A DNA stretch of 64,000 nt from Phallusia mammillata (GCA_965637545.1 OZ281500.1:8866001-8930000); one strand, 5' to 3'; shown: positions 18,876 to 38,680, counted from the stretch's first letter. The notes: generated by a model from the letters alone, not told the origin. Translations and numbers: made by a program.

Positions 18876-19157
18876 AGTTGCCATAGGTGGCGTCTGCCCT
18901 CAGGGATGGGTGTCGAAGTAAATGTTTTTGACCCGAATACAATATATACGGGTGTCGGCCGTCAACGGTCATCATATTCGCTTGTTATTGCGAAGGATAA
19001 CTACAAGCAAACAGGTAAATGTATTTATGTGTGGTGACATGTAAATAAGTTACATGTTAATGCAAAACGTGTGATATTTGACTAGGTTTAGTGTGGCAAA
19101 ATTTATTTAGTGATCTCGCATTGGACAAATCTAATTTATTTATTTTTTAGATTCAAA

Positions 19158-22100
19158 ATGAAATTTCTTGTTTGTGCACTGACCATATTATTGCTGAAAA
19201 CTGCAGTGAAGGGCGATGGAGGTAAGAAACCAGACAATTTAGTAGCATGTTTGCGCTGACATATAAAGCCATGAAAAAAAAGATAATAGACACTATTGCA
19301 CTAAAGTAACTTGAATCGCTTATCTCGAAAAAGCTACATAAAAAAACATTTTTGCAGACTGCCGGGCGAACGCGAAGAGCCTCGCAGCTTCAGGCGAAAA
19401 GCATGACAGTAAGCATAAAGTTTTACAATAGCTGGTTTTTTATTACATTTATCAACAACATGTTTTTTAGATATAGTTGAGTGCATGGACGACCCTTGTA
19501 ACGCGAGCTCCGCGGTGATCAGGGACCTCGCGTCCTGCCCTAACCACTGCTTTATCCACAAAGGAAACTGCAACCTGAAAATGCGTAAGTGCACATTCCT
19601 TTTCGCACACTATAGGTGCAATTAAAACGACTGTTGCTAATATACAGAACTTTCAATTTCAATTTAGGTGTTAACTAATGCGGCACTTTGTTTTCAGTGC
19701 CACTACCTAGTGAGGAGGGCCCAGGTGTGGATGCAAGACTATTTGGTAAGCTTAAAATGCTTGCGCAAAAGTTGTATGATAAGTTTAGGAAACTCTAACA
19801 AATATTTTAAAGGTACTGGAAACCCGTTTCCAAACAACGGCTTGTTGCCACCAGGCTTGCTACCACCGTTTGGCCCCAACACACAGTGCCCGACTTTTCC
19901 CAACAACTGTGGTCTCAGCCCATTCAGCTTGGATTGGAACAGCTTGACAATTCCGCCCGTAAATATTCCCTACTGCCAAAGGTAATTTTATTCTGACGAT
20001 TCCACAAATACATCTCAAAAGCAGTTTATTTTGAATCGCTTTGTCTACTCTACAATTAAGTGTATAATCCCGTACTGCAGGCAGCAGGTACCATGCGCAT
20101 TTATTGGTAATTTACTGGTCAAGTTTGGTGACATATAAACAGATAGTTACGCGTCCTTAAATTTTATTTTTTGCTTTTGAAGAATACACTGTTCGATGTC
20201 CGACCAATCATTAGAAAGTAACCCGAATGCTTGCCACGCCACACCGGGTTGTTACTTCGACCAAGAGTTGCACGCCTATCGCCTTTCGTTCGGATACGCT
20301 ACACTGCCGGGTGTTCCTGTTTGCCACAAAGTTGTACGCAATGCCAGATTTCACACCCTTGTCAACAAATATCTACAAACGGTAATTTTTGCCCCCTTTG
20401 GTAGGCTATTGGATTTTTTTGCCCCAGATGTTAAGTGTTTATTGGCTTGCAGAGCAATCAACAGTGGAATATCGCCTTTACAAACTGCATGATTCAGCAA
20501 AATCTGGAAGAGATTCATGAGCAACCAGCTGGTTGTTACATGGTTTCAGCCTTTCTTTACATGGGGATTCGACCAAAAGTTGCTGGATGGCGGGGTAAGA
20601 CAACTGATATTTATTAGCTTTGGGAGATATTATCTGACCCTCAATATGGTTGCATATAAAATTGGAATTTAGAAAAACAATATAATACCATTCCGTAACA
20701 CTAATCAAGTTTTAGCACCACGATATGCGTAAATCTTTTTTTAACTAAAAACAAAAACCTATGTGACCAAGCTATAATGTGTTGAAGCAAGCCACAGTAC
20801 TGACACTAGTGCCAGGCGAATAACAACGAATGAGAAGTCAATCTACTTTTACAGGTATCAGTAAAACCGAATGTTCGTTGATCGGCGCCTGCTTTGACCA
20901 AACCCTGGGTTGCTTTTACCCATCAGAAGTGAACCAAGTTACTGTGCGTTCTGGAGATGATCCCGAAAGAAGAATGATTCCGTCAAATGGCAACACCTTT
21001 GGTCAACCACTATGCCAACCATTAGACATCAACTGGCCGGCCGCGAAATTTCTCGACGCTTACCACAGCTGTCGTCAATCGGGCTGTGTTGTCGATCCCA
21101 TTATCAATGAAGGCGTGATTAAAGAGAACCTGTACAATATTACAATGACAATGGTTCCTCAGCACCTCCGCTACAGATTTTGGACGAAAGTGCAGCAAAA
21201 TCAGATCTCGGCCGACAACTGGCGTTACGAGTTGAACAAAATGAAACGCCAGTACCCAAATGCGAGCCCTCTGTCCCAGTTAACCTCCAATCCGATGAAC
21301 TTACTAGCCTTTACGCTTGCATTGCAAAACAACCAGAATTCTAATACAGCGGGAAGATCATTTACGCCCGATCAAGGTTCAAATGCAAATAGCGGGGAAC
21401 AGTCAAGACTCGGCTTGAGATTTCCGGGCAATCCAAACCCCTTTTCACCAAACTTCGGTGGTTTTCCTAATCCTCCAAGCTATCCTAACATGGGCACCGG
21501 GTTTCCGATGCGACCATATACAAACCCATTTTCGCCGTTTCAGCCATTTCCCGGTACTGGCTTCCAACCTCAATGTCCATTTTACAATCTCGGCTACAGC
21601 GGTTTTCCCCAACTAACAGGAAGTTTCGAAGGTTGCTGTGAAAGAAACCTGTGTTACATCCCGCGTAATCAAATTGTCTTGCAACGCTCTGGCGTATCTC
21701 CTTACCTGTCCGTTTGGGAAACTTGGAGCAAGTGCTCAAAGTCTTGCGGGGGCGGAGTTCGTACCAGAACCAGACGATGTGTCGCATACAAACGGACCGA
21801 CAACTGTCCTGACGAAAATCAAGAGGAAACGGAGTCTTGTGGTAACGAACCTTGCCCTTTTTTCACACCCTGGGGTCTGTGGGCAAGCTGTAGTGAATCG
21901 TGCGGAAACAATGGTGTCGAAATTCGCGAGCGCGTGTGTCAACCCAATGGTCAGGGATGCGCCGGAAAACAGAGAGAAGACAGACCTTGCAAACGAGGTG
22001 CCTGTCCTACCTTAACCCAATGGTCCGGATTTAGCCGCTGTGACGTGAAATGCGGTGTAGGGTCAAAGCAACGTATGCGAGAGTGCATATCCAGCAACGC

Positions 22101-25894: not shown

Positions 25895-27306
25895 CATTGC
25901 TCGATTCGGCGATTGTATGGTATCCGGCTTATAACATACCGCAAGAGAGTGCACTTCGGAAAAATTTGTGATTTTTAACAGGAATTTTTCTTTTTTTAGG
26001 GAATTATTATAAGAAGAGGCCATATATTGTAAAAATAACCGAAAATGGTACTTTGAGAAACTTATGTGAAAAAAGCTATTCTGACTGTAGATGAAAGTTC
26101 AACAATTAACAATTATCAATTTACTGCAACATTACAAAACTGCACCCTTAAAAGTCCTGGATTAAAATCGAGTAAGGTACGCAAAAATTTTCCTTACGTA
26201 TCGAAAGGTCATCGAATTTTAGAACAGTCCGATTGCGTACGGTTTTACCGGCATGGGCCAAAAAAGTTGTAAATTAAATGTGATTTTTTGTCAATGTTAT
26301 TTATTTTGCGAAAATAATCGCTGGTAAAAAGGGTTTGACATGACAACGGCAGTAATATGTAAAATGCCGATGTAAAAGCAAACGCATTTTGCAGAGAAAT
26401 AGCAAGAGTAACAGATTCCCCTATATTAGGCCTATAGGCTGTAAAATGTAAAAAAAAACTTTATGGGCCAAGTTTGTACCTCTCCCCAAGATGATTGTTT
26501 TTGATAGAAATCCGGGTTCTGGCCACAAAATGGAGCAGTGAAACTGACCGTTCTGGGTGGGGCATTTAGAAGCGGTTTACTCGGAGAGCAATTTCCATGT
26601 TTATTGCTTAACATTTAGGCTATAAAGCAAACTGATGGCCAGCGTATCACCAAATGGGGAACTGCTATATTTTCATTTCGTGATGCTTAGCTACGCAAAC
26701 ATCATTTGACATCTAGACTTCGCTATTGATAAGTGTCGACATTTCACATATTTTTTAGTCATCTGAGCCGAAAACATTTCACATTATCTTTCAGTCATTT
26801 GAGCCAAAATGTGTAAAATATGTCTCTTAACCTTCAATGCGAGTCTTACGAGGTTTAGGAGCATTTCTTTAAGGCAAAATTAGCATGTGGGTTGGTAGTA
26901 CACGTTAATACACCATTCAATGTTGGTTTGTAATACATGATTCAATAAAACTTTGTAATGCATTGTTCAATGTTCGCTAAGGCCTTAATATTTTATCTGA
27001 TTATTTCTGTCCGCTAAATGTCGCACTGTCGCTGTCAGTTTTGTTCTCTGCCTATACATATTTTGTGAAACAAACCCTCCCGTATAGCAAAAAATACAGA
27101 ATTTTGTAATGATCAGCACGTACGACCCAAGAACTACTTTTATTAGGCAGGTACAGCGCAAAATATATTGTACCGCACACCACATGCAAAGAAATCAAAC
27201 ATTAGGCTCGCTATTGGCTCATGACAGAACCTATCCCAGCAACACAGCCATGGATTTAGTCGAATGGCATCAACACGAGAAGCAAAAATAGTGGTAACAA
27301 TTGAAA

Positions 27307-30300
27307 TCATGATCTTCGAGGAAAATTTCGTGTGTTCACAGCAACTTTTGGTTTCTTTTCCGTAGAAACCGCCTTAGCTTTTGTTTCATTTCTTTTAGTG
27401 GAAGAAACTTTAACGCGGCTTGTGGATGCTTTAAATTCGGGTTTTGCTGTGGGACGTTGCTTGTTTCGAAACATGCCTGTAATCGAGCGACGAAGCGAAG
27501 AATTCCTCGCAAGTGATTGAGGTGGCTTGTTTATGTCTTTTTCCTTAGAAGATGACGGCTTTGCCGCAGCACGTTGTTTTTTTGATTGGCGATTTTGTCC
27601 TACTGGCGAAGTAATGTTTACTGTAGTCGACCGATCAGCAGACTGATTTCCCTTTTTCTTTCGAAAAGACAAAGACTTCCATCTTTGGGTGCTAGAAGAT
27701 GGACGAGAAACATCCTTTTCTGGCTGTTTCGTCGCCAATTCGCGATTTGTTCTTGATAAAAACGAAAGCTTTCCGAATTTCCTTTGCGGTGATATAGGAA
27801 TCTGCGAGGGCCTGAGTTTACGCTTTGAAGTTGGATTGTCCGAAGTGGCGTCGCCTGACTTTTCACCTAGAAAATGTTGGCAAACAAATTAAAACACCAA
27901 TAGCACAACACCCTTTTAAAAGTTTAACTATACATAAAAGAACCCAGATGGTAAAAGAGCAGATGGAAAAACAACAACAAAGCTAAATGCAATCTAGTAA
28001 TGCAGCATGAGCACTTTGTTACGCATGCAAGGTTTTCGGGCATGAATGATGAAACTACTCTACAACATGCAGTGGAGCAAAACCCGCCGGCAGGAAACTT
28101 TATGTGTTAGTTGTAAGTCAACACCCAAACGCTAGCAAACAATCGGTGCGCAGTAATGCTATGGTGAACTCGGTTAGAAGCACGTCAAACTATCGACCTG
28201 GTTTGTTATGTACATAGAATTACCGACCTGTCGGTTCGATAAAACCGACACGGCCAAGCGAAGACGCCTTACGGCAAAACACACTGATGAAATGCTGGTC
28301 GACATAATGATTACACTGGCGAGATAAGACGACCAGAACGCACACAGTGGAACATAGCCAGGTACCGACGCCTGCTACTATTTACTGTGTGATGCGAAAG
28401 TGAGGTTGCTTAACGCAACGAGCGCAAACGCTACAACGTGCGCAAACAGAATTTCAAGATCTCTTGTGATGTACACACCACTTACAAATTCCTAAACCAA
28501 TGCTTGATCTTTATCCATGTTTCTGTAAAAAACAGAACAACCTTTTGAGCATATATGCTTCTCTGGACATGCGGTTATCGTGTATCTTGTGATAGTGATA
28601 AATTGTTCCTTAATGACAGTTGCCTACCAGCAGCTTTTAAAGCAAGCAAAGCAAGACAATAATTTTTGTCCAGTAGCAGTTCTTGGTGTGTCAAGAACCG
28701 CGTTGCTAATGTTTAGCTACAATCATCACCGTGTGAATTACATCGCTAGAAATTAGAATCAAGCGAAGCCATGGCTGTATACAGCAGAGCGTTCGGTTAT
28801 CGCTCATTCTTGTGGTGAGTAAAGCAACCGTAAATGAACTTTACGACATTGCGTTTTTAATGAGGGTGGCAATTTTGCAAGCCCATGAAACCAACCCCGC
28901 TTTTACTGCAGCGCGCAGTGTTGCTTCTTTTTATCTGCAGCCAGCTTAGATATGTGGTTGCTTTTCGACGCCACTCTGCTGCCTTGAGTGCTCGAAGCAG
29001 GGAGCCGAATTGCTGCCGGTGTGTCGTCCATTTCTTTACATATACAACAAACGTGGCAGTTCGAACTTAGCAAAATACAAACACGTTCAAAGCAAAATTC
29101 ATGCTAACCAGTGCAACAGACCAACAAGCCGCAAAGCGCATTCCGCGGCTGTGGCAGTTTACAACTGGTGCGATAAAAAAATTTCAGCCCTTCGGAGTCG
29201 CTGATTCAGTAACGTGCGTGATTTTGTTATGATTCAAACTTATACAACAGACCAATACCGGTTCCTGTACTGACCAGGAACGATCGAAACGGGCTAATCA
29301 ATATAATCAAGCGCGTCCTCAAATTCTTCGTCGTCGGAAGAGCTCTCGTTGAAAAACGGTGGCTGGTTGGAGAGCGGCGAGACGAAGTGTGATTTTATGG
29401 CTACATGCACTTGATCAATGCCTGAAAACAAACCGGGCCATGAAACGTTAAGGCGCTGTACGTCCGCTATGGACATCGATCCACGTTTGCCTTTCTAAAA
29501 TATTTTCTGGGATTTCAGGCGAATCAAAAGGCTTGTGACAAATGATGGAAATTCCCAGTTAACATTTGCACTGTTTTACGATCAGAGACGCCCGATAACC
29601 GCATTCGCCGCCTAAATCGACACAAATGAAACGAAGTTACGTCACAAATGTCACATCTGTCAATGGCATCGAGAATTTACGATCACGCCGTGCGGCACAC
29701 CCCAGTAACACCTACACCATTAATGCCAGGCTGCAATTTGCTGGCATGAACATGTTGTTAATGGTTAAAAATGTACTCGCTATTTTAGGTTATTATGGAT
29801 GACTATGCTATAATGCAATAGGGACTCGTTTGGTAAACCAGTCTTCACCCATCCTTTTTTTACCGATGTTGTATGCGTACCTTATTATTGATGAGATTAT
29901 TTAAGACATTCTGTAAAAAACGGTTACTAAGTTAGTTAAATCCAAGGGAAATAAATAAAACAAGGTTTATCTTTAATGCATAAAGTTTCAGGTTTGAATC
30001 GTTAAGTCAAACCAGAACGTTTTGCAACACGCAACCAAAGGCTAAAGTGAAACAAAAGTGGTTTTGCACAAACTTTACGCTATTTGCGACAAGCCGCTAC
30101 TCAAGACACAGAACATCGATCATCAGCCTGTGCTTCTTGGTGCCTCTGTTGGCGAGCTAGGAAAGCCATAACCAAAACAGGAAAAACAGTTATTTTTATA
30201 GATTGCTATAAAATAGAGCACAGCCATTTTAAATGAGTTTTGCAAAAACAAAAACTTAACATACCAAAGTAAATATTAACCCTTTCTGCAAGGTCGTTTT

Positions 30301-33300
30301 ACATAAAAACCATTCAAACGTTGGAAAGACATTTAAATATAACGTATTTAACGGTTTTAACCTTTGTGTGGCAAGAAATATTTAACACGATTTCATGCAG
30401 AAAACCTACCAGCAATTTGTGGCGTGTCCTCGCTATCACTGTTGTTCGATGCCACACTTTTTGCTCGAGAATCTACAGACGAACCACTGGTCGGTACTTG
30501 AGTATCATGAGACGTGTTGACTTCGGTAGTAACTGCGTCTTGCTTTGGTTTAAAGGCTGCGAGGACTTTGTTTAATGTGGGAGAGACGTCTTTGGGTGGT
30601 TCAGTCGGAATGTCTTTCGAGCTCTCTGGTAAAGTGACTGGAATTGGGATTTTTCCGTTTGACATAGTTGTGGTTTCCATTTCAAGCATTTCTTCGACGA
30701 TAAGACCGATATCGTTGGCCGACAAAGGTTCTTCATTGCCTTGAGGAATATCTTCGGAACGTGTTTTGGGTTTCTCAACTTCTATGTACTCTTCTGGGGT
30801 CTCTATATCAGGCGAAGGAACCGCAGCCGTTTTGTCCAGGCAAATCTGACTCATGACGTCGTTAAGTTGACCAATTTCTTTAACGGTTAAGTCATCACTC
30901 ACCGTGCTGCAAGTTTCTGTATCACTAGACTGGTTTGATTTTGAGTGGGCTTTCACATCAACTTCAAGAATTTTAATGTCATTTGTTTTGTCGGAAGTGT
31001 TAGTTTCCACATGAACATCAGCTTCAGTAGTTTTCACATTGTTCGGTTTGTCGATAGAGACATTAGCTTCAATGGGAGGTTTGGCAATTACATCAGCTTC
31101 AACAGTTTTAACATTGTTGGGTTTGTCGATAGAGACATTAGTTTCAATGGGAGCTTTGGCAATTACATCAGCTTCAACAGTTTTAACATTGTTGGGTTTA
31201 TTGGTGCAAGCGTTTTTATGACTGGCCTCCGCAACTGGAATTGAATCAACAACGTCGGTCGGCTGTTGGCTTACGGGGTCAGGTGGGTTTGGTGTTTGCT
31301 GACGGTTGCTGGTTTTTTCTCTGTCCTCTGTGGTTTTTTTAGCGTCAGGGAGTTGATCTACAGAAGACCGATCAAGGGGCGTTACTGATGTACTATCAGC
31401 AACCTTTGGTTTGTCGACATCAGCTTCTGTACATAAAGAGTTATCTTTGCTGGTAGTCTGTTGGTTTTGCTTCGATTCAGCTTCGGTAACTTTTGTTTGA
31501 CTTTGACTAATATCGTCGTTTATCGCTTTAGTAGCACTCATCTTGCGTAGGGCATCGGTTCTGGGACTTCTGCAGTAACAAAAATGAGGAATGTAATGTG
31601 TTTGCGAACGTTAATAGGCTTCTGTTTACAAAACAAAAATTCATGCAAAACAAATAACATATTGTACGTTTTTGGAGAAGCCGGTGCATGGTCTGGTGAA
31701 GATTTCTTCAAATTAAATCCTTTCCTTATGTCTTTCAACAAGTTGTCGATAATATTTTCCTGCAAAGACAACACACAAACAAACGGTATTTTCGACAAAA
31801 TAGTAGTACAAAACTGTGTAATACGATTTCCAAAATCGAGACGCTACAAAATAGTTGACTGTAGGGGGTTATTTCAGGCTTTGTACCTCAGCAGGTGGTG
31901 GAGCGTGTCTTTTGCTCTTGGGTTTCCCGCTTTTAATTCTTTCAGCCTCCTGGGCTTCTCTTTTCTTCTTCTTTTCTTCGGCAATGGCGCGTTCCTTATT
32001 CTCTTTGATTGCTTTCTTAATCTTTAATTCAAAAAATGTGATCAATGACTCCCAAAAAAATGGTTTGTCTTACCATTATCAAACAGTTTAACCATGTTAA
32101 TTAAGTTTAACCCGCAAACAAGCACATGTCCTTGTTACACGCTTGACAGGCGAAAATCCAGCGATCTGTTGCAAATTAGCAATTCCATGCCGAAAAACAA
32201 CAGGTTACCTTATACAGGGATCTATTTGCAAGGTATACAGTACCATAAAACGAATGGCGACGGTTATCTGTTAACAAAACCGCGCATTTTCTGAAGCAAA
32301 TTAATGAAATGTTAAATTTCTAAACCGTGTCAAGCTAGGGAAATTGGCAGCCCGGTAATTGATAGTGCTGGGTCAAAACAGTTAACAAACACTCCACTAG
32401 GTTGTCTGATGACAAAACGCAATTAGAGACCGCTACAACAAATAGCGATGATTTACTGCTTGTAAAACCAGTACGTGTATTTACAGACCAAACATACCAA
32501 TTCTATTTCAGAGTGGATTTATTGGTTTTTAAGGGTTTGTGTATTGGCATGTGCCTGGCGATGAAACGACTACAGTACCTGGTTTGAAAATTTAGCAAAG
32601 GTCGAGATTCCATCTTCCAATCTGAATTTCCTTTCATCTTCGACAAGGTAGTTTGCCAAATCAGTTCGTAACACCTCGATTTCATCCAAATTGTCTTCAA
32701 GCAGTTTTACGCGGTCTGCTGCATTGCCAAGAAATTCTTCAAACTGCTTCTTTATCTCATCTGATGCTTTATCGACCTAAGAACGTTTAGATATGAAAAA
32801 AGTGATTCTGACATTCGAAATAACTCCAAAGTTTAATATTTGTACATGGACGTTTTAATTAGTGGAATGACTAATTTGACAAAACATAGTGCCTACACAT
32901 CGAGAAACTGAGGTGGCCTACATGTACCTAAATATGAAACAAGTTTGCTTTTAGCCACTAAATGCAAATTTGATGTAACGACATAAATACGTCGATAAAC
33001 CGCTTCCTTTAGTGGTTAGTAGTATGATGTACAATGTGGTTAAAATTATATTAAAATAGTTGGACTATCGACCGTAACCAGAAGTGTGAATAACCTGACG
33101 TTGCAGCTTGCTGATAACGCCGGTCAAGCGCTTCACGTCCTTTTGTATCTGCTCGACCGACACATTTTGGCATTTCTCGACACCGATTAGATCTTCAGGC
33201 AAGGTGAGAAGTTCTGGGTGCTTTTTCTCCGCTTCCATCACCACGTAATGGAGCAACGTCATACGAGGTTTGTTCGCTTTAGTTTCAGCCAACTGCGAAT

Positions 33301-36300
33301 AATTAACTTTATGTGTACGTCACCGCAAGGTTAATTGCTTTTACACTCTTAATCCAAGCCACGAGGGGAATCAATCACGTTGTACCAGCAAACCAAGCCA
33401 AGTTACCGCTTTGACATTTGATGTTTATCAAGTTCAACCGGCCTGTTTACTTTAAGCATCAACCCCTAGATCCGGGGTACCAGGTGCTTGTCTGAGCTTG
33501 GTTGATCCCTAATAAGAGTGGCATTTCCCTGGTTGACGGCTACCAACCAACTATTCAGCTTTGTGACATTTGATGACATTATATTTGGTGTGTCACTGCT
33601 TTGGTTGATTACAACCCGTACGATGGTTTCATTCACTGTTGAGTGTCATGAATGCTCACCATTGTTATTGGTGCTCATTCAACGACATATGGTGCATTGT
33701 ATACAGTGAAAGTAGTGATTGATTCTGCCGTTACGTGAAAATATCAATCCGTTCAAATTCTGGGTTGTATTAAATCTTTCAATTCGGCGCGATAAATAAA
33801 GGGTTTACCTTCAGCAGTGATGTTATTTTGAAACCTTGCGCGTCACCCGAGTGTGCACCGAAGTTCATGAAGTTGCCCGTTTTGAGAATAAGCAAGAGAA
33901 AGTCTTCTAACTTCTTGCAAGAACGAATTTCTACATAAAATATTGATGCCATACAAGGTTAGGTAACTTTGCGCAACAAGTTTTTTTTATACAGGCACAC
34001 TGAAGTCAGTAAATTACAGAAATTGCCTTGTCATGAAAATGCATTGTTCACAACGTTGTCGAAACAACGGTTTTGTTTGGAGACCAAGTGTGACATTTTT
34101 TTGCTAATCTGATGAAAAAGATTTGAAAAGCCCATCTGACCTTTACACGCCTTTTTGACGTCACGCATTGTGGGCTCGATATCTGACATCTCGTCTTCAA
34201 AACTCTCACGGATAATGGAGGCTTCAATGCAAAGTTGATAACTGGGAATTTGCGATAGGGCAAGGAAATACTTCTCAACGTTGCCCAAAAGAGCCGGGTC
34301 TCCAGTATAGGCGTGAATCATCTCAATTTCGGATTGTTCGGGAAGGAATTTCAGCATGTTGCGTAATTTCTCTTCGGCTGCGAGAAAATCGTTCACGGAT
34401 GAATTCACTTGCGGTCACGGGCACGCCTTTTGCGTAAGCAGTTTTTGTGCCAAAAATGAAATTCCACAAAGAATGCCCGCCCATAAAGTAAAAACTGAAA
34501 AAAACTTACCTATCTTTAGTTTAAGTTTAGAAAACATACGAAGAATATTTCCTAGCGCTATTTAGTATATTGTTCCTACAAATACTGTGACTAGGCAGTG
34601 AAATAGTGCCAGTAATAAATATCGACTTTCACATTTACTTAAGCTATGAAGTATTGCTGCTGCAAATGCGACTAGAGTGCCGTGGAATGAGTGCTACTAA
34701 TAAAAGCTTCTTATTTTCACTAATACTGTTAAACCGTTTTTAAAGCACATATAAACTGGCTTCACATCCAAATGATAAATAATTCATCTCCCCACTTAAG
34801 ATTTCTCTGTTTCCTTCCTTCAGCGCTTGCACGATCACGTCGTTACTGAGTCGAAATTGACGCAGAAATATATTGATGTTGAGACTGCGACGGGAATCTA
34901 CCAGACTTACCTTCGAAAAGAAATAAACATTATGGTGTTTTTGTCATCATTAAGGCAACAATGCCAAGCTAAACCAGCAAAAAATGTGTTTATATACATA
35001 CTTCAGTTGGTGCCGATTTTTTTGTTTCCTTTGCCGGCGCTTTGGAAATAACTTTTTGCGCAAACAGCTCTTCAATAGCTTTGTAGTTCGGTTCGACATC
35101 TGTCGCTCCTTGCTGGCCGAGTGAATCCCACACACTGTTACTTCTGCAGCAACCATAAAACGTTTCAAATACACCCAGTTTAAGGAAACGTTGAATTTAT
35201 TATTGAACTTTACCTTGTTCGCAGTGTGTTGCTGGGAATCTTTTGCCAATTGAACTTACGTAGCTTCGAACTGGGTTTAGGTACAGACACAGAGCGTCGG
35301 ACTGGGAGAGTGCTGTAAGACTGATTTGCTGTCATTGGGATGATTCCCCCTGGTGGTGGAGGGATACCTCCCATAGGTGGAGGTGGTGGAATTCCCCCCA
35401 TAGGTGGAGGTGCTGGAATTCCTCCCATTGGAGGAGGCGGAGGAATTCCACCCATGGGTGGTGGAGGAGGGATACCTCCCATTGGAGGAGGTGGTGGAAT
35501 TCCTCCTACAGGAGGAGGCGGAGGAATTCCCACCATAGGTGGAGGTGGTGGAATTCCTCCCATGGGAGGAGGCGGAGGAATTCCGCCCGAAGGTGGAGGT
35601 AGCGGAATTCCTCCTATAGGTGGGGGTGATGGAATTCCCCCAATAGGTGGAGGTGGGGGAATAACTCCCGTTGGAGGCGGTGGAGGTATCGTCCCAGCAG
35701 GAGGGGGCGGAGAAATTCCTTTGATTGGGGGTGGTGGAGGAATACCACTTGCTGCAGGAGTAACACTTCCCGAGGGTGGTGGTGGTGGTGGAGGGGGAAT
35801 GTTGCCCTGGGGCGGTAAGGATGAAACAATACTTGAAGGAGTTGGTATTGGAGGTTGCGGGATGACATTTGTCTTTTCCTGGGGAGCGTCTGTCTGGATC
35901 TTGACGTCTTTCTTAGGAGCACGCCGCGTCGAATTTTCTCTCCCTTTTGCCAATTTTTTTCCTTCTTGTGCAGTTTTTATAACCACTGCCTTTTGCACCA
36001 GGACCTCAACAGCTTCCCATATTGAGTCCGCCAATGGATCTTCCGTGTTAATCTGGAGAAAACTTTGAAGCACGGCAAGAAGATGGTTCCCCTGCGGCCC
36101 CGTGCAAACCTGAAGACCATGTAAGTTCCAATCGGTCTATGTGAATTCAAATTACCCACAACAACGTACGTACTTTGTTGAAAACCGCCGAAAACACGTC
36201 TTGGTGGTTGTTAAGGTCGATGCCAGAGGCGTTTGTTAATTCAGCTATCTCTTCATCGTCAACGAGTTTGCGCTCCTCAAACACTTCAAGTTGAATTAGC

Positions 36301-38680
36301 AAATCCTCGGATTCGCTGTGACTGAGAACAATATGAACTCTCGTCTCGTAACCACCAGCGATTAAAATGCTTTGCGACTTCATGCAACGCTGAATAAACC
36401 ACAGTGAAAATCACGGCAACACGAACATGCAATTTTTGCCAAACATTTGTAGAGCGAAAAAGCAATTCAATAAATCAGATTTTTGCGTTAGGTTCTTCAC
36501 AAGATTGTGCAATATGTAGGAAGGGATTTTCTCATTGACCAGTTTATCCTATGAGTTGCAGTTTAATGCCAAACAATTACCAATAACTTATTACACTTGA
36601 TTAACATTTCAAACAATAACAACAATATACTCCAACATCCAGTTTACGGCAATAAACGCGGCTATTTGCAAATTCTTTTTCCAGAAATTGCAACTTGGCG
36701 CAAAACCAGCCTCAAGCGTTATAAATTTTAAGCGTAAAAGTTCAAACATGTTTTACCAACTGTCGGGCTCCTGAAACGCTTTGGTTCTAGAAAGTAACAA
36801 AACCGTTTGCTTTCATGATATATATTGGAACTAATGATTCGTACAATATTTAGATAATATTGCATCAATTAAGAAGTTATAATGCATCAGGAATGTTATA
36901 TTTTTGTAATTTTCAATCAACCTGTAGATAAGATAATGCAAGATTAATACTGGTAAAGTTTACATATGCTGTGAGTGAAGTTCAACCAAATATGTTGATG
37001 CAGTCGTCGTGCAGCATAAGCATGTTTACAACTGTTAGAAATTCACGGGAAGCAACACACACACCGCCATGCACCGTATGACACGCATGCAGCCCCAGTT
37101 CTCCGACAAACCAATGTCGAAGAGTGCAAAAGTGCCTAACAACGCACACAGGAAGGGGTATGGTGAAGGACATGCGAATGTTCTATATAATAGGGTTAAA
37201 AAGGGGAGTATATTGCTGTGTGAAATGGGCGTTAGTAATATGGTTAGCAGAACCCGTGAAAGCCAACATCTAACACACAATGCTACTGAGCGTTCGCCAG
37301 AGCTGCAACTTACAATTCGGAAACGAGCTGAGTTTCCCTGTGGTTGAGTGAAAGCAGTGTTACTGTTAACCAAATGCAGTGCAGTAGTTATACCCTGGTA
37401 TAAAATGCCATGCCGTGTGCACTAGCACCTGGTCAACATTCAAAGCGTTAGTCACGCTTCGTAAACAACAAATAAACCAATATGGGCCCAAAGCAACTGC
37501 AAGCGTCTCCACCGTTAACGGATATTACGCTAACAAAAAATGCCCATGCACATGTTTGTGCCCAAAATCGATACAAGCTATTACAACAAAGCTTACCGAA
37601 GCTGGGAAAATGTATCCAAGATTTGCAAACCTAAATATGACAACAAAAGCAATTTTGAGTACGGGGTTACAATTTTTCAACATACTCGTACCTACCAATA
37701 AATTCGTTTCGCAACTGAATTCTGTCATGTAGTGAATCTGTCGACAGTATGACCGCATTAACGAAAGAGAGCACTGCGGTTTGATAAGGGGCGTTTTCGG
37801 TGGCCTTCAGTTCATTTACAGCCACGCTGAAGCGATACCGTTGCGACTTGGATTGCTGTAAAACAAACATACAGTGAAATTGATGTTAATTTATTGTGTA
37901 GCAGGGTCACAGGAGCATAGTGGCCGCCAACTCTACCTTATAATGTTCCATGGCATCAATAGCCCGTAGTTTTCCATCAGCTGAGTAAATACACATAGCA
38001 GCAAGCAGTTCAAACACCTGCTTTTTTACCATCACGTTGCTGCTGTCCAGGGCTGAATACAAACAACGAAATGTAAACTTAGATGGGTTTATTACATATG
38101 CTTGGCGCATTCGCACATACCAGTAGATAGCATTCGGGTGTAATCGTTCTTTGAGATCACGTGATCCAGCCCTGTGCGAGAGTTCATCACGGACTTGACG
38201 CACCTAATTGGACAGGCATGTAATTAGTCTTCGCAAAGCAACTTACAGCGTAACAACCGGACAGGTATAGTTGACACACCCAACGCAGTGCAGCAACTCC
38301 ATGGATTTGAGTATCGACGTTTTTGACGATCGGGCTGTTTCGTTTGAAAGCCGTTCCAGGGTGGTAAATAGAACACCCAGTCCGTCCAAGTCCAAAAACC
38401 CCTAAACATATCATGGTACGTAACGTATTATATTTGCCATATCTCTTGAATACGTTGTTTTAAATACGGTGTGAAGCTATATGCTTACAAGCATCCATTC
38501 TTCTGAACACTCCTGAATTTTTCTTCTTAATCCAGAAAAGTTTTGCACTGATGGAAAGTGCAACAGTTTAATGCAGAGTTCTGGTTCTGCATTTTCTAAG
38601 TTTGAGAGAGTTTCTTCGGCCTCTGTCCTCTCTTTTTTCTGGGCCTGGGCAGCAATACTAGACCAACGTTTTTTAAGCAT
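27307..38680 (-). CDS. INF2: Inverted formin 2-type formin (DID-FH1-FH2-WH2/DAD) with several candidate alternative terminal exons
   Basis: DID: [65 protein letters not shown]1: GGIPPPPPM repeats. FH2: [56 protein letters not shown]: [17 protein letters not shown]. Confidence 0.93.
30960..31200 (-). repeat. 75-nt (25-aa) coding tandem repeat in the formin tail
   Basis: [15 protein letters not shown](A/P)PIE(T/A)NVSID twice, plus two decayed units. Confidence 0.85.
35345..35760 (-). repeat. FH1 polyproline coding repeat (~27-nt GGIPPPPPx units)
   Basis: More than 10 GGIPPPPP-type units in ORF 35210-36073. Confidence 0.9.

Follow-up and report, generated by a model that had tools for sequence, protein, structure and literature searches.

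A probable splicing-operated tail switch at the 3' end of the INF2 formin gene of Phallusia mammillata

The DNA analysed here, hereafter the window, is a stretch of 64,000 nucleotides (nt) of Phallusia mammillata (GCA_965637545.1 OZ281500.1:8866001-8930000). Its minus strand carries a gene that, judged from its domains and best matches and not from a tree, is an orthologue of INF2 (inverted formin-2). We conclude that the 3' end of this gene works as a splicing-operated switch between C-terminal tails, a reading to which we give a probability of about 75%. A large exon ends at a donor (30410) that splits a codon after its first base, G, and the 2.5-kb intron behind it would offer a fixed series of optional exons, each of them ending translation. 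The elements concerned are listed here from 5' to 3', a slash marking a splice site:

30410-31541, minus strand: large exon of low-complexity sequence, downstream of the exon with WH2/DAD; 31541 is the limit of the open reading frame (ORF), not a mapped 5' boundary.
29881-29910, minus strand: 30-nt cassette exon, ttttttacag/...AAG/gtacgc, with an in-frame TAA.
29294-29494, minus strand: FFAT-tail exon (exon b), recognised by conservation, with its core EEFEDALD at 29329-29306 and its stop at 29296-29294.
28903-29033, minus strand: polybasic CaaX-tail exon (exon c), recognised by translation and conservation, ending in CALQ.
28486-28522, minus strand: 37-nt Trp/Lys (W/K) cassette microexon, with junctions 30410 to 28522 and 28486 to 27866 in run X1.
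27116-27866, minus strand: default terminal exon (exon d), recognised by a junction and by contig ends; its coding part (27866-27307) specifies 186 residues, basic and Ser-rich.

The letters follow an earlier reading of the same DNA (the original prediction), which had proposed four frame-compatible terminal paths, a to d, leaving from 30410 and carrying different targeting labels. Retranslation reproduced the coordinates, frames and peptides of all four exactly, and the phase-1 donor (30410/GTAGGT) and the poly(A) hexamers (ATTAAA at 29977-29972 and 28861-28856, AATAAA at 27144-27139) are where they had been placed. The proposal of a bank of tails holds for b, c and d, which belong to conserved classes, and for a C-terminus chosen by splicing; it is not supported for path a, for which neither a junction in the RNA runs nor conservation was found. 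Two further tails had been overlooked, that of the 37-nt W/K exon, the most conserved of the alternatives, and that of the 30-nt stop exon, both with junction contigs.

The RNA evidence consists of Logan contigs from four RNA or probable-RNA runs, including X1, X2, X5 and X12. The large exon ends at 30410 as G/GTAGGT, in phase 1 with one base of the split codon, and this is the common departure point from which every RNA junction found leaves; the same phase-1 G donor occurs in Ciona (AGAGAAG/GTAAGT) and in a tunicate contig, L002. Exon d is the main, dominant terminal exon in the runs examined, because the junction from 30410 to 27866 was found in three of them (X1, X5 and X12) and contigs of exon d end at 27116-27131, directly past its AATAAA. 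Two short exons can be placed in between. The 30-nt exon is entered from 30410 at 29910 in X1 and X2 and left from 29881 to 27866 in X2, its inclusion giving ...QIA-ECLK and a stop, in effect a tail-less isoform; with the 37-nt exon, it shares the property that RNA contigs connect its upstream side to 30410 and its downstream side to 27866. The stretches skipped at all RNA junctions have GT..AG ends. In X1, the junction contigs from 30410 have depths of 16.5 (to 27866), 11.3 (to 29910) and 12.5 (to 28522), values similar enough that the alternatives are not rare in this sample, isoform ratios not being readable because rare variants are lost from Logan contigs, which give neither strand nor local depth. 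Among the other junctions proposed originally, those from 30410 to 30156, 29611 and 29033, none occurs in the contigs of the four runs, so that no contig joins 30410 to path a, b or c; over these three stretches, coverage comes solely from low-depth contigs without splicing, which span the adjacent intron as well.

The distribution of RNA over this intron is itself uneven. In X1, X2 and X5 its first 500 nt (29911-30409) have far less coverage than the next 1950 nt (27958-29910), where coverage amounts to some 20-40% of that of the exons; X12 shows no coverage of the intron. The poorly covered part could reflect early removal through the acceptor at 29910 while the choice of tail is pending, but the filtering of contigs could just as well have produced the pattern.

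These junctions bear on the architecture of the switch. The tails are probably a row of stop-bearing cassettes and not independent terminal exons, a view whose RNA basis is the two microexons. The original prediction of independent terminal exons is borne out for exon d; the alternatives verified by RNA are instead cassettes spliced onto it. In mammals, INF2 is made in a CAAX and a non-CAAX version, spliced so as to differ by a stop-bearing CAAX cassette (reverse-transcription PCR products of 477 and 420 bases), the CAAX form being farnesylated and bound to the endoplasmic reticulum (ER) (Ramabhadran et al. 2011, PMC3237625). There, likewise, a small stop-bearing cassette lies upstream of a default last exon, which is retained in the mRNA as 3' untranslated region. 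Exon b is likely a cassette too, considering the lack of any poly(A) signal within 260 nt after its stop, a candidate donor (CTG/gtcagt) at 29275, about 20 nt past that stop, and the mammalian precedent; in Ciona, TTG/GTCAGT lies at a similar distance. Exon c, past which an ATTAAA lies (28861-28856), may be either a cassette or a terminal exon.

The evidence that most of these tails are real comes from other tunicates. The Ciona intestinalis INF2 entries, which are NCBI models from two annotation releases (isoforms X1-X15, XP_026693250-65 and XP_078494216-30), diverge after ...STSRE into four classes: a long basic tail, an FFAT tail that ends in ...GPYICAEFSDEFSSSDEFEDAQDFW (final residues ...SSSDEFEDAQDFW), a CaaX tail that ends in ...SSIDKSDKKKKSLCRVQ (its last residues being KKKKSLCRVQ) and a W/K tail, EPWTKLKQWFKSL. 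At the Ciona locus (L004), the corresponding exons are the following:

18912-19016: FFAT exon, matching window exon b (29494-29294).
19285-19410: CaaX exon, matching window exon c (29033-28903).
19712-19747: W/K exon, matching the 37-nt exon of the window (28522-28486).
Ending at 20724: long tail, matching window exon d (27866-27307).

The Ciona tails are about 40-60% alike to those of the window and lie in the same genomic order behind the phase-1 G donor. The differences are that the long Ciona tail has no SxIP motif, that the W/K stop lies inside the exon, that the FFAT exon has several alternative acceptors and that no 30-nt ECLK exon was seen. In Clavelina lepadiformis, the INF2 series reads ...SSDDEFEDALEYI, ...RKRKRKPSLCSMQ and ETWTKLKKFFRVF, each followed by a stop, and then a long basic ORF. 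The tunicate contig L002 encodes ...SSEDEYEDCYEFI and DTWNKIKKWFKAF, both with stops, and an exon d with SSQIPVSP, and L001, a Logan contig and the one relative recovered by a search with tail d, encodes ETWIKIKRWFKNL followed by a stop, and PSRIPVSP. The tail classes present keep one order in every locus, all three alternative classes in the window, Ciona and Clavelina, and FFAT and W/K in L002. On this comparison of sequences, tails b, c and d are real and represent conserved classes.

The best-conserved DNA of the intron is the 37-nt exon, which aligns to all four other loci; only one other part of the window intron, the FFAT core, aligns to other species at the DNA level. In L001, 32 of the 37 nt are identical, the exon is flanked by AG and GTAAGT, and it lies about 580 nt upstream of exon d. 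Inclusion of the 37-nt exon in the window shifts the frame, and the first bases of exon d supply a stop (TT+G, TGA), which yields a 13-residue tail; the stop is met at once because exon d starts with GTGA in the window (27867-27863) as in L001 (668-671). A 13-residue W/K tail is found in five tunicate loci (window, L001, L002, Ciona in annotated isoforms, and Clavelina). Ciona, Clavelina and L002 have its stop within the exon, and the window and L001 reach it by frameshift into exon d. That the same tail is ended in two ways points to selection on the protein tail itself. The W/K tails, whose net charge is +3 to +4 and whose hydrophobic moments lie at 0.57-0.81, might fold into a basic amphipathic helix for binding to a membrane or a partner, a suggestion that is the weakest of our functional assignments.

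FFAT-plus-stop exons are collinear in Ciona (annotated isoforms), Clavelina and L002, and the DNA of the core is 85% identical over 33 nt between the window and Clavelina. An exact look-up of the 60-residue ORF of exon b gave no match. Several phase-1 acceptors in the window lead into the FFAT stop; the best direct one, ggtttgttttcag/GC at 29421, is stronger than the route through the 32-nt exon b1 of the original prediction, yields a 42-residue tail and resembles the annotated cag/GC acceptor of the Ciona FFAT exon. The consensus of the FFAT motif is EFFDAxE with an acidic flank (PMC8306308); candidates are judged on seven elements, at most two of which may be suboptimal, and a change of F3 to K is tolerated in protrudin (PMC3261905). 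Counted by hand against the latter rules, the window core E-F-E-D-A-L-D with its flank SSSDDE is optimal at six of the seven elements, only position 3 (Glu) being off. The pattern [DE]-[FY]-E-D-[AC] with a Ser/acid flank stands at the C-terminus in four tunicate loci, with Glu at position 3 in all of them, and the motif lies within a low-complexity tail whose disorder we judge from composition. The core E-F-x-D-A-x-[DE] and the acidic, Ser-rich flank are shared with known FFAT and FFAT-like motifs (OSBP/ORP, CERT and protrudin, EFKDAIE), and as in protrudin only position 3 is non-canonical. In contrast with known FFAT proteins, the motif stands here at the extreme C-terminus of a formin and in one splice form only. 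When the full text of the literature was searched for INF2 and FFAT jointly, the only results were reviews naming the two separately, and no paper on an FFAT-tailed formin was found, in agreement with the original prediction, which knew of none. From its sequence, the FFAT tail is a candidate for docking INF2 on VAP at the ER.

Exon c ends in a CaaX box of the expected form, with Cys fourth from the C-terminus, a final Q and a polybasic stretch upstream. The acceptor at 29033 is the first that opens the ORF, giving 43 residues; since the annotated Ciona exon gives 42 and that of Clavelina 40, the boundary assigned originally is plausible. Related tails occupy the same relative position in Ciona (...DKKKKSLCRVQ) and Clavelina (ending in KRKPSLCSMQ), and vertebrate INF2 proteins end in ...KTKKGCVVQ/CVIQ. 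The mammalian ...KTKKLCVIQ likewise has a Q-ending CaaX box after Lys-rich residues, and the mammalian default tail is basic too. By sequence and position, exon c belongs to the class orthologous to the CAAX exon of vertebrates, and by analogy with mammals its tail would be farnesylated and hold INF2 on the ER membrane.

Four ORFs of the intron end in CaaX-like boxes: CSIL (30229-30209), CSVS (30124-30104), CIIA (29826-29806) and CALQ (28923-28906). Only 0.65 such ends are expected, and one of 500 shuffles reaches four, the pattern having been written post hoc; among the four, only CALQ is conserved.

The default tail is itself conserved, the orthologue of exon d in L001 being 41% identical, with a 10-residue block (27681-27652) and RNSSLRRS (27507-27484) kept between the two, and an orthologue is also present in L002. 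An SxIP motif lies at 27810-27787 (RP-S-Q-IP-ISP). The nine-residue rule for such motifs (X1-X2-[ST]-X3-[IL]-P-X4-X5-X6, where one or more of X1-X4 is K/R and none of X1-X6 is D/E; PMC3649978) describes the window sequence as well as those of L001 (KP-S-R-IP-VSP) and L002 (RS-S-Q-IP-VSP). As in known SxIP signals (CLASP, APC, MCAK and STIM1), S-Q-I-P stands here in a basic, Ser/Pro-rich, acid-free context; the INF2 motif is present in three loci and not conserved in Ciona or Clavelina. On these grounds the tail is a candidate for binding EB proteins. We know of no INF2 shown to bind EB proteins through SxIP.

How much of this could arise by chance was assessed with dinucleotide shuffles. The intron (30409-27867) is 2543 nt long and contains 118 AGs. 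A frame entered at any AG will meet a stop somewhere, so that frame compatibility lends no weight to a terminal path; the ORFs of the intron are not longer than in shuffled sequence (longest 69 residues versus 104 +/- 25). The motifs behave differently: in 1000 shuffles per species interval, the FFAT-plus-stop pattern arises 0-1 times (0 of 1000 for the window motif), the W/K pattern 0-2 times and the polybasic CxxQ-stop pattern in 2-6%. Motif content and conservation of b, c and d, as judged from sequence, exceed chance; path a and the 21-nt microexon candidate of the original prediction do not. The idea that b and c are chance intronic ORFs (they have no junctions, their ORFs fall below the shuffles, and c is dense in single-nucleotide polymorphisms, SNPs) was considered and dropped, the Ciona isoforms and genome showing the same tails in the same order.

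Taken together, these tails suggest how the switch might operate. When all optional exons are skipped and 30410 is joined to 27866, the protein would receive the 186-residue basic, Ser-rich tail with its SxIP motif. Inclusion of the FFAT exon (about 29421-29276) would give a tail that docks INF2 on VAP at the ER, and inclusion of the CaaX exon (29033-28903) a Lys-rich CALQ tail that would be farnesylated and anchored in the ER membrane. The 37-nt exon would provide a 13-residue basic amphipathic tail for a membrane or a partner, and the 30-nt exon a four-residue stub, ECLK, with which every tail would be removed. The splicing of the FFAT and CaaX exons in P. mammillata is something we infer, the argument for their use being one of conservation since no contig joins them to 30410.

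Several observations count against this switch. The FFAT and CaaX exons have no junction contig to 30410 in the four runs, and Logan contigs, being filtered and lacking strand and local depth, do not give isoform ratios; the Ciona isoforms, for their part, are computed models. At its third position, the FFAT core carries Glu instead of an aromatic residue. In an X5 contig, exon c has four SNPs in 131 nt as compared with none in 734 nt of exon d, and L002 has no recognisable polybasic CxxQ exon. Conservation of the motifs, on which the original prediction had made its case depend, holds for the FFAT and polybasic CaaX classes in Ciona and Clavelina and for SxIP in L001 and L002; SxIP is absent from the long tails of Ciona and Clavelina and, as the compared sequences indicate, occurs only in some tunicates. 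No conservation of the 30-nt exon is detectable at the DNA level in the compared loci; this exon could be splicing noise, and as its length is exactly k-1 its two junctions are not phased by the assembler.

The same observations feed the best-surviving alternative, namely that INF2 of P. mammillata is made only with the long tail or in the two microexon forms, and that the exons for FFAT and CaaX are inherited relics, now unspliced. The absence of b and c junctions from the four runs, the intron-like depth of these stretches with contigs crossing the proposed acceptors, an SNP density in exon c resembling that of the surrounding intron, and the apparent loss of the CaaX exon in L002, which indicates that loss happens in this group, all fit such relics. 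However, each ORF is unbroken and retains its stop and motif, the splice sites are plausible, the exon c SNPs in X5 are synonymous (two) or conservative (two), and a core 85% identical in DNA to that of Clavelina amid otherwise unalignable intron is unexpected for an unused relic. Moreover, because contigs drop rare variants and show presence, not absence, the missing b and c junctions are absence of evidence only. We consider the relic explanation unlikely, at odds of something like one in eight.

More doubtful still is that the 30-nt and 37-nt exons are poison exons, or noise, which lower the output of full-length INF2. Both cut the frame short, and the smaller one is not conserved and adds four residues only. 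Yet the peptide, length and terminal position of the 37-nt exon are kept in five loci with conservative changes only, and its stop is reached in two different ways. The stops lie in the last exon or within about 20 nt of it, where decay dependent on exon junctions is not expected, if the mammalian rule is carried over to this tunicate.

Three elements of the original prediction found no support in these data:

30265-30285, minus strand: 21-nt microexon candidate, unsupported.
30101-30156, minus strand: path a, ending in ...RCSVS and a stop, known by translation only.
29580-29611, minus strand: exon b1, the 32-nt first part of path b, with splice-like contexts only.

The 21-nt candidate has no junction in the four runs, no counterpart among the Ciona isoforms and no significant conservation; the only DNA matches near it and path a are two non-significant, T-rich ones (E 0.74) at 30260-30226. 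The prenylation tail CSVS likewise finds no support, path a having no junction in the four runs, where a contig of X1 runs unspliced across its acceptor, nothing that corresponds to it in the Ciona isoforms or the Clavelina interval, and no significant DNA similarity; it is most likely a chance intronic ORF. Exon b1 shows no junction in the four runs and no conservation in the compared loci, and the b1+b2 route into the FFAT exon is possible but unsupported. The original picture of four independent terminal exons (a, b1+b2, c and d) with their own cleavage sites, including a CSVS prenylation tail, is hence the least probable reading of all, for, although its frames and peptides are right, ATTAAA hexamers lie past a and c, and CaaX-like ORF ends exceed expectation under a post hoc pattern, path a stands unsupported, exon b is followed by a donor and, within 260 nt, by no poly(A) signal, its direct acceptor outdoes the b1 route, and in RNA the alternatives take the form of cassettes spliced to d, as in mammals.

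We return to the tail switch, an enlarged counterpart of the well-described two-way switch of mammals: two options there compare with four or five in P. mammillata, and a default tail of 9 residues with one of 186. The FFAT, W/K and four-residue stub tails have no mammalian counterpart among the 120 best proteins inspected; in this set, vertebrate INF2 shows the CAAX and non-CAAX classes only, and echinoderm and amphioxus INF2 show no FFAT or W/K tail. At the amphioxus INF2 locus, a single outgroup, patterns derived from tunicates, which may be too narrow, detected no FFAT or W/K exon. The four tail classes are already public in the NCBI models of Ciona, apparently undescribed. The fuller proposal, for which we see even odds, is a switch with at least four options in which the FFAT and W/K tails are new to formins, FFAT docks the formin on VAP at ER contact sites as a protein-based alternative to the lipid anchor, W/K has a target of its own, and CaaX is the sole member kept by vertebrates.

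The identification of the gene relies on the remainder of the locus, which contains the following elements:

36147-38203, minus strand: Drf_FH3 ORF piece (Pfam).
35210-36073, minus strand: poly-proline FH1 ORF (ORF composition).
33065-34408, minus strand: FH2 ORF piece (Pfam).
31753-31715, minus strand: WH2/DAD motif of 13 residues (motif).

Their order, DID/FH3, FH1, FH2 and then a C-terminal WH2/DAD, is that of INF2. A 93-residue stretch of FH2 has as its nearest long relatives INF2 isoform X8 of Ciona intestinalis and a protein of C. savignyi, at 54-58% identity, and every best relative of these two Ciona proteins is named inverted formin-2. A protein homologue search with the 377 residues of the large exon gave no match. 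Three 75-nt tandem copies in this exon (31029-31199), encoding ...KPNNVKT[VT]EADV..., are a recently expanded low-complexity repeat inside a disordered region.

Other loci differ in what they contribute. Clavelina has two tandem INF2-like genes (L006:1-3170 and L006:10001-15377), of which only the upstream one has the series of FFAT, CaaX, W/K and long tails; the next gene after INF2 is Ribosomal_L6 in both Clavelina and Ciona. The INF2-like gene of Styela clava (L005:10001-13081) is a single uninterrupted ORF of 3081 nt, intronless and ending directly past the WH2 motif, and is uninformative on tail exons; it resembles a retrocopy or else a paralogue lacking tails, and a multi-exon INF2 orthologue, should Styela have one, was not found. 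Locus L003 ends 2 kb past the FH2 exon and is uninformative on tails.

The location of INF2 decides the role of the actin that it assembles: in mammals, the farnesylated ER form serves mitochondrial constriction and calcium transfer, and the non-CAAX form supports the Golgi. Tunicates are the sister group of vertebrates, and one intron of their INF2 gene would offer tails of VAP-binding, lipid-anchor, amphipathic and microtubule type. If this is true, targeting of INF2 to the ER would be achievable in two independent ways, and the tails would be natural "address swap" reagents for one formin. The case also illustrates that short conserved tail exons can escape RNA evidence at the level of contigs. 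The evolution of the vertebrate two-way switch would then become testable in Ciona, where tail fusions are easily expressed.

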